The notes beneath the pieces were generated by a model. It did no database searches, was not told the DNA's origin, and worked only from the letters and a program-made list of their open reading frames with translations. From the sequence record NC_028950.1: DNA of 64,000 nt. One strand, given 5' to 3'. Of this stretch, positions 248 through 3,256 are shown piece after piece. Within the stretch, counting starts at the first letter, position 1, and each line of letters begins with the position of its first letter. Position numbers and translations under genes: made by a program.

Positions 248-271
248 CCCTACTCCCTTGCGGGAGTAGGG
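248..271. terminator. Bidirectional hairpin terminator
   Basis: CCCTACTCCC-TTGC-GGGAGTAGGG between convergent genes; A-run on the left (U-tract on minus strand), TATG at 283-286 on plus. Confidence 0.8.
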
Positions 272-291: not shown

Positions 292-636
292 TTAGACATT
301 CGGCAATTTGACTGCTTTCACCGAGCCATGATCGAACAGAAAGTAATGCTTTTCACGAACGAGCTTGTAGAAGTCGTCAGTCAGCGTATAAGTCTTGTCG
401 GCTTTCAACTCAATGATGTCGTTCGCGATCAGCCAGTCCAACCAGATATCAACCACGATCGGATCGAGATCACGTTCCCGGTATTCAGCCACCAAGCTTT
501 CCATCGTTGCTGGTTTCGTGAAAATGATGTACCGGATCAGACGGAGCTTGTGATCTTCGGGTTTCAACTCACGGCCGTAACGAATACAGTCTTCGGCCAA
601 CTCGACGATTGTCGGGTGCTCTTTATTCAGAGACAT
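292..636 (-). CDS. Winged-helix-like protein (array member 6)
   Basis: LIANDIIELKADKTYTLTDDFYKLV helix-wing pattern. Confidence 0.6.
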   Translation of the reverse strand: MSLNKEHPTIVELAEDCIRYGRELKPEDHKLRLIRYIIFTKPATMESLVAEYRERDLDPIVVDIWLDWLIANDIIELKADKTYTLTDDFYKLVREKHYFLFDHGSVKAVKLPNV

Positions 637-1024
637 TGTTCACCTGTGCGGAAGCAGAGGTTGCGGGCTCGACAGGTTGGAGATACTCGCCGATGAGTTC
701 CATCATGCTGTCTGTCAGCACGTATCCCTTCTTGGTCGGATGGGCTACGCCGTCCACGTGCAGATCCACCAACAGATTGCTGATGTTCATCTGCGGCATG
801 AAGACGTTCGCTTCACGCAGCTTCTTGAGCAGCAGGTTTTCGTTGATGGGTTTGTTTTCGCCGAGATACAGCGTACGGACGATGAAGCCGGAAGCCGTGA
901 TGTTCGCGTGACCACCATAACCTTCGATGGTCTTCGTCTCGACGGATTCCTTGCTACGAAAGCATGATGCCGCCATGGACTGGATCCGACGGAAGCCCTT
1001 GGCGTTTCGATCGATTTTTAGCAT
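623..1024 (-). CDS. Winged-helix-like protein (array member 5)
   Basis: LHVDGVAHPTKKGYVLTDSMMELI; start chosen at MLKID after TTAAAA, uncertain because it overlaps the upstream gene. Confidence 0.55.
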   Translation of the reverse strand: MLKIDRNAKGFRRIQSMAASCFRSKESVETKTIEGYGGHANITASGFIVRTLYLGENKPINENLLLKKLREANVFMPQMNISNLLVDLHVDGVAHPTKKGYVLTDSMMELIGEYLQPVEPATSASAQVNNVSE

Positions 1025-1352
1025 TTTTAATTGCCACCTCAAAAATAAGTTCTTTCATGTCAGATGTAAGTCTGAGCATGTTTCTCGGAAGAGACTGCAC
1101 CACACCATGTTCTGCTAGAAACCGAGCTACTTTCTTTACATTGTAGTCGGTTGCACTGAAATACTTTTCATGCCTCAGATCGGCAGCAATCTGAATGTAA
1201 CTATGCGGTACGTCGGACGAGAGAACCAGTTTCCTTATTACCAGGACACAGAGTCGGTCCTGAAAGCCTTCTACCATTGTTGCTTGTTGAGCCAAGTCGC
1301 GCATCTGCGCGTCTGCCTTATTCAGCTTAGGTTGTTCTTTCAGGGCCGACAT
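954..1352 (-). CDS. Winged-helix-like protein (array member 4)
   Basis: LAEHGVVQSLPRNMLRLTSDMKELI; GGAGAGG RBS before MSALKE. Confidence 0.6.
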   Translation of the reverse strand: MSALKEQPKLNKADAQMRDLAQQATMVEGFQDRLCVLVIRKLVLSSDVPHSYIQIAADLRHEKYFSATDYNVKKVARFLAEHGVVQSLPRNMLRLTSDMKELIFEVAIKNAKNRSKRQGLPSDPVHGGIMLS

Positions 1353-1360
1353 GGCCTCTC

Positions 1361-1690
1361 CTAATGTTTGGTCATCGTCTGGCTCAAAATCAGATCGATG
1401 ATGGACGTCATCTCCGGATGGAGCCGATACGACACGTTCGGAAACGACGTCTTGGTTGCGAGGATTCCCTTCTGCAACAGATCCGTACATGCGTCACGCA
1501 ACATGTCGGTCGTATGAATGCTGTCACATCCATAGATGCCGAACGCCATGTCTTGCAACGACTTGGGTTCGCCATTCTTGTCCTTCAGGTAAAACACTAC
1601 CTTGTGCTGAGTATCCCAGCTGTCTTGCGGCTTTGCTGCGATGATGACGACTTCTGCCATCTGGCGACGCCACATTTGTTGTGCTGTCAT
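1361..1690 (-). CDS. Winged-helix-like protein (array member 3)
   Basis: LLQKGILATKTSFPNVSYRLHPEMTSII. Confidence 0.6.
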   Translation of the reverse strand: MTAQQMWRRQMAEVVIIAAKPQDSWDTQHKVVFYLKDKNGEPKSLQDMAFGIYGCDSIHTTDMLRDACTDLLQKGILATKTSFPNVSYRLHPEMTSIIDLILSQTMTKH

Positions 1691-1699
1691 TTTGTCCTC

Positions 1700-2266
1700 T
1701 TATTCAAAAGCTTTCTGTTGTTTGAGGGTTTCGTAGAGATCGAGCGCTTCCTTCTTGGAGAGCTTGATCACGCCGACGTAGATATATTCGAGATGCTTCT
1801 GCGTCTCGAACAACCACAAAACATTCTTGTAAAAACCATGCAACTCGGCGAGAGTCACATCCATGCCCTTGATCTGGATACTGACTTTGATCAGATCGTG
1901 TTTCTTGTCTGCCAGAGCCTGACGAGCGGTCTTGCCTTGTTTCTCCGATACCAGGCTCACGAAGTCCAGAGACGGCTGATAGTAGATCCTCGTCTTGAAC
2001 ATCGTTTCGTATTCCGGTGTGTACACACGGATGATGTTCGCCTGTTCGAGATCGGACAAAGCCATATCGACTTCCGATTCCGAGAACAGAAGGCTGCCGA
2101 GGTTCTTGTAGAAGTCCGTTTTCACATGACCTTGTGGTTCGTTGCTCGGCGTCATGAGAAATTGAACGACAGCTTCTTCAACCGACAGATTGCGTTCGTA
2201 TTTCACCGGTGCGCATGCAGCAGCAACCAGCTTCGCGATGACTTCATTGTTTTTATCGAGAATCAT
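1700..2266 (-). CDS. Winged-helix-like protein with C-terminal extension (array member 2)
   Basis: VDMALSDLEQANIIRV...YYQPSLDFVSLV; GGAG RBS. Confidence 0.55.
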   Translation of the reverse strand: MILDKNNEVIAKLVAAACAPVKYERNLSVEEAVVQFLMTPSNEPQGHVKTDFYKNLGSLLFSESEVDMALSDLEQANIIRVYTPEYETMFKTRIYYQPSLDFVSLVSEKQGKTARQALADKKHDLIKVSIQIKGMDVTLAELHGFYKNVLWLFETQKHLEYIYVGVIKLSKKEALDLYETLKQQKAFE

Positions 2267-2316
2267 TTTTAGCTCCGTGAAAGGAATTGTAAAGTTTACA
2301 ACAGGAATTCACGTGA

Positions 2317-2324
2317 GTTATATA
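2317..2324 (-). promoter_or_regulatory. Putative early (virion RNAP) promoter core TATATAAC
   Basis: One mismatch to the phiKZ early consensus TATATTAC; intergenic, after a terminator, with upstream TTTC. Confidence 0.6.
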
Positions 2325-2346
2325 TGTCTGAAATAAAATGCATACA

Positions 2347-2376
2347 CATACACACTGGCGCAAGCCAGTGTGTATG
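2347..2376 (-). terminator. Hairpin terminator
   Basis: 13-bp perfect stem CATACACACTGGC/GCCAGTGTGTATG with 4-nt loop. Confidence 0.8.
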
Positions 2377-2385
2377 ATGGGCGCT

Positions 2386-2706
2386 TTATGCGGCGATTTT
2401 AAAATTGCAAATACGGTCGATCTCCAGCCTCGTCCGCAAACGCAGACGCGACTCCTTATGCAGTCGAACGTGATTGATGGAGAAGATACGACGTGAAACC
2501 AAGTATCCTTCCGGCGTCACAAAACGACTCTTCAAGTAACCCCGTTTTTCGAGCAGTTCCATCTTTTCCATCAGTCCGTCAGCAGACAACTTGCCTTCTG
2601 CATCACGAACGATGTCCGATGAAGTCTTCTCGACCCCGTATGGTGTCATGAGGAGATCGAGAATGATCTCTTCTTGCACCGTTAATTGTTGTTGGTCCAG
2701 TTCCAT
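2386..2706 (-). CDS. Winged-helix-like protein, PadR/MarR-like (array member 1)
   Basis: IILDLLMT...LLEKRGYLKSRFV...RRIFSI. Confidence 0.65.
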   Translation of the reverse strand: MELDQQQLTVQEEIILDLLMTPYGVEKTSSDIVRDAEGKLSADGLMEKMELLEKRGYLKSRFVTPEGYLVSRRIFSINHVRLHKESRLRLRTRLEIDRICNFKIAA

Positions 2707-2912: not shown

Positions 2913-3002
2913 TTTTATTACCCGTCCTTGTGAAAAACCACAGGATCAGCGAAAAAAAAATGTAGTCCGCCCCGTTAAGAGCGGACCCTCCATTAGCGCG
3001 AT

Positions 3003-3170
3003 TTAGCTGCGCTTCTTAGCTGCCCGAGACTTGCTGATGTGGGCTTCTATTTTTTTGTCTTCTTCCATCAGTTTACGAGCCTGTTCCTGAGTCATGTGAT
3101 GCCGTTTCGCAATATCTTCATTGTGAGCGGCAGCCTGAAACAACTTTCTCTGACTTGGGGTATACGGCAT
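3003..3170 (-). CDS. Small basic protein (55 aa)
   Basis: MPYTPSQRKLFQAAAHNEDIAKRH; basic C-terminal tail. Confidence 0.65.
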   Translation of the reverse strand: MPYTPSQRKLFQAAAHNEDIAKRHHMTQEQARKLMEEDKKIEAHISKSRAAKKRS

Positions 3171-3256
3171 TTTCAAACTCCTCAATGGAAAAAATGCGAC
3201 CGAACCCCGAAGGATCCGATCGCCCAACTTACCGGGCTGAGGCTCCCGGTAATCCT

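Follow-up and report, generated by a model that had tools for sequence, protein, structure and literature searches.

Near one end of the 64,000-nucleotide stretch of NC_028950.1 that we analyzed (the window), six consecutive small open reading frames (ORFs) on the minus strand, O1 to O6, raise the question of whether they encode one duplicated family of proteins and what such a family would do for the phage that carries it. The first 6 kb of the window correspond at 100% identity to positions 124001-130000 of Ralstonia phage RSL2, a phiKZ-related jumbo phage of 224 kb in the genus Chiangmaivirus, and the locus is flanked by a convergent DnaB-like helicase gene, which ends at window position 229, and by a run of small minus-strand genes. 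The original prediction, made without database searches, placed the six ORFs at 292-2706, where the ORF list indeed has them, and described them as a duplicated and diversified battery of nucleic-acid-binding winged-helix (WH) proteins of the MarR/PadR type. The best explanation of the whole, to which we assign a probability of about 70%, is a WH expansion comprising O1 to O5 in one operon, which would supply, early on, a set of modules for regulation or for interaction with the host.

Homology and fold of O1 to O5

From the helicase end, the array consists of O1, a short-form WH paralog of 114 amino acids (aa) with an acidic core (ORF120; 292-636); O2, a WH paralog of 133 aa (ORF121; 623-1024); O3, a basic WH paralog of 132 aa with an invariant KNxKNRxKR tail (954-1352; no annotation in RSL2); O4, a WH paralog of 104 aa (ORF122; 1361-1675); and O5, a long form of 188 aa in which an N-terminal WH (residues ~1-110) is joined to a C-terminal domain (~125-188) (ORF123; 1700-2266). 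O6 (ORF124; 2386-2706) is a conserved small protein of 106 aa, possibly also a WH, encoded in an upstream transcription unit. These limits, all on the minus strand, are the likely ones, set by comparison with relatives. Because the ratio of nonsynonymous to synonymous substitution rates (dN/dS) against orthologs was 0.09 to 0.48 for all six (dS being partly saturated), the six ORFs are real genes under purifying selection. On the plus strand, a 302-aa ORF at 1364-2272 was rejected as a gene, being a shadow opposite O4 and O5 without conservation evidence; in a greedy longest-ORF gene call, it ousted both of them.

The very low direct identity noted originally was borne out, and single-sequence BLAST among the six proteins gave no significant E values. 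They had also been said to share a two-part sequence pattern, which we recast as a regular expression and ran over every ORF in all six frames of the 224-kb genome. The full motif matched exactly four times, in O1, O2, O3, and O4, compared with 0.06 matches in residue-shuffled proteins; since the motif was defined after these proteins had been viewed, this count overstates the significance, and the homology tests below are independent of it. The second half is degenerate in O5 (Y-x-P-[ST]-x-x-F-x-x-L), and O6 has the first half only, so that the pattern stands in full for four of the six.

Profiles built from six sequenced relatives gave only weak links between the O families. Further distant arrays were gathered from metagenome and Logan contigs via the orthologs of O4, O5, and O6, and with family profiles of 9 to 14 orthologous sequences each, hhalign probabilities reached 96.9% for O1 and O5 (95 columns) and 95.4% for O1 and O3, followed by O3-O2 (58%), O4-O5 (58%), O3-O5 (57%), and O4-c5 (49%), c5 being an additional long form found in relatives. 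Eight unrelated neighboring families, including ORF125 and ORF126, served as controls and gave 0 to 2% against everything, one pair at 11% excepted. The families of O1 and O3 fell into one group under BLAST single linkage. When O1, O3, and the N-terminal domain of O5 were aligned with MAFFT (A9; 25 sequences), an N-terminal LNK/LDK-x-x-x-I-x-x-LA helix common to all three appeared besides the motif; hhalign placed O2 (93.3%, E = 2.8e-7, 76 columns) and O4 (92.2%, E = 6e-7, 61 columns) with A9. When the RSL2 proteome was searched with hmmsearch, the O1, O2, and O3 profiles had one another as their best nonself matches, and a distant O2 ortholog (L023:5043) matched the O3, O5, O1, and O4 hidden Markov models (HMMs) collinearly. 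By these profile-profile, A9, BLAST-linkage, and hmmsearch links, O1 to O5 are true paralogs and diverged copies of one domain. The proposed duplication of six genes is thereby narrowed to five, with profile probabilities of 92 to 97%, and O6 is without detectable homology to them (at most 6%).

The domain shared by O1 to O5 is a winged helix. For O5, AlphaFold gave, from four sequences, a model with a mean predicted local distance difference test score (pLDDT) of 76 and the element order H-H-b-H-H-b-b-H (H, helix; b, strand), with H8-18, H29-37, b47-48, H49-57, H63-75, b79-82, b95-98, and H100-109 in the N-terminal domain; this is the WH topology H1-(b1)-H2-turn-H3-b2-wing-b3, which we infer for O1 to O4 via their homology of 92 to 97%. 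Placed on the model, the motif covers the last part of helix 3, strands 2 and 3 of the wing, and the Thr/Ser that caps the next helix. In a Foldseek search of the PDB with the O5 model, the best 50 matches were all WH proteins (best E = 7e-3; probabilities mostly >0.9), among them TFIIE, MarR/MepR/ZitR, ArsR/SmtB, PadR, SSV1 F-93, Orc1/Cdc6, and RPC62, so that AlphaFold and Foldseek, run on O5, agree with the predicted fold. VIA-align wide, which is independent of Foldseek, gave WH domains as 50 of the 50 best chains for O5 residues 4-116, at a middling Z of 7.4 to 8.6 with root mean square deviations (rmsd) of 1.6 to 3.5 Å over 65 to 90 residues. These included ArsR (Z 8.3) and the globular domain of histone H5, which superposed over 70 residues at an rmsd of 1.6 Å (Z 8.4); the Z-beta domain of ADAR1 (Z 8.1) was one of many equal matches and did not stand above other WH domains.

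Sequence profiles, which are independent of the model, led to the same fold. Per-family profiles gave nothing significant against PDB sequences, and the merged superfamily profile A9 was the only one to succeed: its best matches were Zur (E = 0.0018), the WH-B domain of Cdc53 (0.0033), and BlaI (0.0099), its further top matches were AdcR, MCM-WH, eS10, MecI, Fur, AsnC, RPA32C, PadR, and ArsR, and the rest were mostly WH-domain proteins, unrelated entries such as annexin V and designed proteins being few. Against 1.84 billion proteins, A9 had 39 matches at E ≤ 0.001, and every match outside the family that had any Pfam match carried WH-type families among them (RPA_C, MCM WH, MarR, TrmB, HTH_12, HTH_45, Penicillinase_R, and HxlR). 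Together with the O5 model, these matches uphold the reading of the motif as the mark of a WH domain. For O2, the nearest structures to a model in the ESM Atlas (pLDDT 0.62) were Fur-like and IclR regulators, with template modeling (TM) scores of 0.55 to 0.57. A search of BFVD with the O5 model retrieved a 104-aa RSL2 protein (probability 1.0, TM score 0.69, rmsd 3.8 Å), which is almost certainly O4 (ORF122), the sole annotated 104-aa gene among the candidates checked.

The C-terminal domain of O5 (residues ~125-188; window 1700-1890) is the best-conserved part of this protein, has a beta-beta-alpha-beta-beta-alpha arrangement, and is common to the long-form paralogs c5 and c13; K133, K147, and E173 are invariant, and W151 is present in at least 90% of the sequences. 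Among the matches listed in the O5 fold searches, all fell on the N-terminal WH.

The finer assignment to MarR or PadR failed. None of the six proteins matches the HMM of MarR, PadR, or any other Pfam family: no protein matched the MarR family (PF01047/PF12802) at E ≤ 1, PF12802 (MarR_2) run against the six-frame translation of the genome gave nothing at E ≤ 10, and the PadR HMM (PF03551) did not match the proteins; PadR chains appeared as weak matches only, at E = 0.55 for A9 against the PDB and 0.06 to 0.08 for O5 in Foldseek. Scans of the six proteins with Pfam, PHROGs, NCBIfam, and PADLOC gave nothing informative, although four of the proteins have PHROGs of their own, with function unassigned. 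A scan of IMG/VR with O5 returned no relatives, and all detectable relatives of the array are in Chiangmaivirus-like phages. The array is thus a new WH family, in a setting where jumbo-phage expansions of small domains of the DNA-binding type are already known.

Transcription of the array and its neighbor O6

A phiKZ-type early promoter motif (TCAGACATATATAAC, minus strand, 2317-2331) lies upstream of O5 and reads TCAnnnATATATAAC at 2331-2317. Genome-wide, the pattern TCAnnnATATAT[AT]AC was found 11 times, compared with ~0.1 expected, and every site is on the minus strand. Within the window these are at 2331, 22413, 24502, and 33706, and elsewhere at genome positions 8172, 51623, 60045, 98326, 100474, 200272, and 221986; the copies often have nnnGTGAA next. 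A highly conserved AT-rich motif of ~10 nucleotides, repeated upstream of several operons, characterizes the early promoters (virion RNA polymerase type) of polymerase-encoding jumbo phages (PMC7598289), and TCAnnnATATAT[AT]AC is a repeated, conserved, AT-rich motif of this kind. The 11 sites are likely to form a map of the RSL2 early promoters. A sigma-70-like match at 2293-2265 was rejected as a promoter; it overlaps the O5 start codon, in a region with fewer such matches than shuffled sequences have.

A terminator-like hairpin with a 12-bp stem (2347-2376, minus strand) stands directly after the O6 stop codon, at 2376-2347, is followed by TTTATTTCAGACATATATAAC, and parts the O6 unit from the array operon. 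The junction of hairpin and promoter precedes the array in every relative examined, ten phages and contigs in all, the distant contig L023 included; among these relatives, the stem sequence differs with pairing retained, and the promoter core is nearly invariant. An early promoter at 2317 ahead of five ORFs, as originally proposed, is therefore well founded as a motif, by its 11 sites and its conservation in relatives. From O5 to O1, successive genes are at most 24 nucleotides apart or overlap, and an intrinsic terminator between O1 and the convergent DnaB gene (248-271, minus strand) has a 10-bp G+C-rich stem followed by a T-rich tail. O5 to O1 form one operon, from the promoter at 2331-2317 to the terminator at 271-248.

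O6 belongs to a separate transcription unit, together with ORF125, upstream of the hairpin at 2376-2347. It evolves slowly (73 to 92% identity in relatives), and hhalign gave at most 6% against every array family and 4.1% against A9. The nearest named clusters in the ESM Atlas were all winged helix-turn-helix (wHTH) families, at scores of 0.88 to 0.90, which is a lead from a protein language model. Weak matches were obtained with the O6 profile against the PDB (best IML3, E = 0.17, and a 70-aa transcriptional regulator, E = 0.37) and, for one member each, against Pfam (Stork_head, 0.09, and LexA_DNA_bind, 0.17); weak tblastn matches to SPO1-like Bacillus phages (E = 0.1 to 0.8) were taken as chance. 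Given the language-model lead, O6 may tentatively be described as a WH protein whose wing is basic (+4) and whose C-terminal helix is basic and invariant. Farther upstream, ORF126 (3003-3170, minus strand; 55 aa, isoelectric point [pI] 10.1) forms a one-gene unit in the region 2964-3223, between terminators at 3223-3196 and 2987-2964; both are good intrinsic terminators, and the unit has no recognizable promoter motif.

Variation of the array among related phages

Copy number in related phages, which had been named as a check, varies: between O6 and DnaB, relatives carry 4 to 8 members of the superfamily, with four in FLC6. RSF1 and three contigs have the extra long form c5, of 213 to 218 aa (hhalign to O5, 84.5%; Foldseek E = 8e-4); two contigs carry two copies of O5, and others add c13 (94% to O5) or c15 (67%). 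In the FLC phages, a 61-aa ORF, a 283-aa AAA-like ATPase, and a 167- to 176-aa protein with NUMOD3/I-TevI DNA-binding motifs stand in place of O1, an arrangement that looks like a homing-endonuclease-type insertion; the insert adjoins DnaB (L002:2274-3958, L004:2275-3950, and L015:5620-7295). Fusion has also occurred. P0043, a 452-aa protein in the syntenic position on a 218-kb JGI contig (L023:6001-7359), has at least two WH modules, and the 552-aa P0036 (L022:70-1728) has three, at residues 6-105, 114-215, and 264-354. Further multistretch matches of 640 to 1440 aa (P0041, P0046, and P0047) are without a Pfam match. Copy number, gene order, and fusion state thus vary among relatives.

Identity between RSL2 and RSF1 is 93.5% for DnaB and 78% for O6, and it falls to 61% for O2, 52% for O5, 46% for O3, 41% for O1, and 38% for O4. 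By these comparisons, O1 to O5 diverge far faster than the adjacent DnaB gene, yet under purifying selection. They are a lineage-specific expansion of one small WH domain in Chiangmaivirus-type, phiKZ-related jumbo phages.

The gene for O3 is unannotated in both RSL2 records, where 1025-1360 is left empty, and is annotated in four relatives (FLC4-5C, FLC6, RsoM3USA, and SURPRISE13). Orthologs are present in all relatives, at 46 to 72% identity and with a dN/dS of 0.28, and the family has a pI of ~9.9 besides its invariant tail. In RSL2, O3 and O2 overlap by 71 nucleotides (954-1024), and both frames are retained: the C-terminal tail of O3 (QGLPSDPV...) is kept in the FLC phages, RsoM3USA, L012, and L013, and the N terminus of O2 (MLKIDRNAKGF...) is kept in RSF1, SURPRISE13, L016, L017, and L019. 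The O2 start may instead be Met17, which would shorten the overlap to 23 nucleotides. The O3 ortholog of RSF1 (L006:8923-9150; RSF1 127032-127421) aligns over 130 residues with one TAA stop inside and is annotated as a 75-aa ORF, which may be a truncated copy.

Possible functions of the array proteins

The original prediction went on to cast all of these proteins as binders of nucleic acids, which the charges make doubtful. The median net charge of the recognition helix (helix 3) is -3 in the O1 family, -2 in O2, -1 in O4, -4 in O5, and -3 in O6; it is +1 in O3 and +2 in c5, and O3 is the only one of the six that is basic. The globular domain of linker histones H5/H1, the tightest superposition on the O5 N-terminal domain, is a strongly basic WH, whereas the WH core of O5 has a net charge of -7; sequence identity between them is 9%. 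In wHTH-DNA complexes in general, an acidic helix 3 is a poor reader of the major groove. We suggest that the array proteins would be produced as infection begins and would form a diversified panel of small modules that act in regulation or on the host. O3 would be the likeliest binder of nucleic acid, because it is basic with a conserved Lys/Arg tail, and O6 possibly binds nucleic acid as well. Because an acidic helix 3 reads the major groove poorly, the WH of O1, O2, O4, and O5 would more likely serve as a protein-binding surface, like many WH domains (those of cullin, RPA32C, TFIIE, and MCM), than as a sequence-specific reader of DNA, and the C-terminal domain of O5 may mediate oligomerization.

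Several considerations count against this proposal. At the level of the fold, O5 alone of the five has a confident model from this analysis; the AlphaFold model of O4, from four sequences, had a pLDDT of 47.6, was unusable, and was left out of the fold search; the fold evidence for O2 is a mediocre Atlas model (pLDDT 0.62); and the BFVD entry was equated with O4 from length and annotation, with no accession match. The VIA-align Z values, middling by the calibration of that method, place the weight on the uniformity of the matches and on the independent sequence profile. The "early" timing would follow from similarity of the motif to those of other jumbo phages, and RSL2, unlike phiKZ, is rifampicin sensitive and needs the host RNA polymerase (PMC5468394), so that the promoter may be read by either a phage or the host polymerase. 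As for function, a protein with an acidic helix 3 may still bind DNA by way of its wing or of partner proteins.

Other explanations compete with an early panel of WH modules. According to one of them, which is in essence the main interpretation in the original prediction, all six proteins are classical, sequence-specific, dimeric wHTH transcription factors of the MarR/PadR kind that set the temporal program of infection from operators on phage or host DNA. The nearest structural neighbors of the WH fold are bacterial repressors, and the array has its fold in common with the MarR, ArsR/SmtB, Fur/Zur, BlaI/MecI, PadR, and HxlR regulators, of which the A9 profile retrieves Zur, BlaI, AdcR, and MecI; the common signature is a hydrophobic helix 3 and a G-hydrophobic strand, then a Y-x-L-T strand with a helix cap. 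Jumbo phages typically encode 1 to 15 HTH/wHTH factors, maybe acting with their own RNA polymerases (PMC7824862), and O3 is basic, as are the wing and tail of O6. Unlike these regulators, however, the array members fall below any Pfam or NCBIfam threshold, the six-frame MarR_2 search included, and most of their recognition helices are acidic (-1 to -4 in the families of O1, O2, O4, O5, and O6). The short forms (104 to 133 aa) have little sequence beyond the WH and lack ligand or metal sites and the extra dimerization helices of MarR and PadR; the genes form a tandem multicopy phage operon, and identities of 38 to 61%, against 93.5% for DnaB, would be unusual for regulators tied to conserved operators. 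We regard this explanation as unlikely.

A panel for counterdefense and host takeover is likewise improbable, although several features of the locus speak for it. Each acidic WH copy would bind and block a host target of its own, be it a nucleoid protein, a defense sensor, or an RNA polymerase factor, and an arms race with the Ralstonia and Burkholderia hosts would have driven the copies apart. The early-type promoter, the acidic surfaces, the rapid divergence, the change in copy number, and the replacement of genes at the DnaB-proximal end all suit such a role, and the related phages infect two host genera. Set against this, neither PADLOC matches nor resemblance to any known anti-defense protein turned up when the six proteins were scanned, and dN/dS was below 0.5 throughout, with no sign of pervasive positive selection.

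Quite improbable, in our estimate, is the idea that the acidic WH paralogs are diversifying protein-docking modules that do not bind DNA at all. They could be accessory factors resembling TFIIE or RPC62 on the sigma-less multisubunit RNA polymerases of the phage or on the host polymerase that it needs, or they could be decoys that occupy host DNA-binding defense or nucleoid proteins. Among known systems, the array can be compared with tandem-WH, protein-binding factors (TFIIE alpha/beta, RPC62/RPC3, the C-terminal domain of RPA32, the MCM WH, and the cullin WH-B), many of whose WH domains bind proteins and not DNA. TFIIE is the top Foldseek match of full-length O5 (E = 7e-3), RPC3, RPA32C, MCM, and Cdc53 appear in the profile search, and relatives of the array have two or three WH modules per chain, as these factors do; if docking were the true function, these fusions would unite in one chain a complex that in RSL2 is put together from separate subunits. 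Unlike TFIIE, the array lacks a zinc ribbon or any other TFIIE feature, whole-chain TM scores are ~0.3, and no sequence relationship was found beyond the generic WH profile.

Least probable by far is that unrelated small ORFs resemble one another by chance or through their composition, which would suit the very low pairwise identity and the nonsignificant single-sequence BLAST E values but is refuted for O1 to O5 (and possible still for O6) by profile-profile probabilities of 92 to 97% against 0 to 2% for controls, by four genome-wide motif matches against 0.06 expected, by a collinear alignment that includes the N-terminal LNK/LDK helix, and by the fused tandem copies in relatives.

The preferred reading, an expansion of O1 to O5 as a panel of small modules, has precedents in other jumbo phages, such as the zinc ribbons of Bacillus phage G (~35 copies) and the Myb-type HTH factors (Iyer et al. 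2021, PMC7824862). As in those expansions, one small regulator-type domain has been multiplied into many diverged copies; unlike in them, a winged helix has been expanded, the copies adjoin one another in a single operon behind an early promoter, relatives fuse them into tandem-WH polypeptides, and the family is confined to Chiangmaivirus-like phages. We see the array as a real but fairly ordinary case of a phage multiplying a regulator-like domain, most copies of which look poorly suited to binding DNA.

For RSL2 and its relatives, five "hypothetical" genes, one of them absent from the RSL2 annotation, gain a fold and a family relationship, and the new WH family is confined to a clade of plant-pathogen jumbo phages studied for biocontrol. 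The likely early transcription units of RSL2 can be mapped from the motif with its 11 sites and from the terminator-promoter junction, which is conserved. The array also illustrates compactly how a regulator-type domain in an early operon is duplicated, diverges, and is fused, and its acidic recognition helices make it testable whether the WH expansions of phages are transcription factors or protein-binding modules of host takeover.

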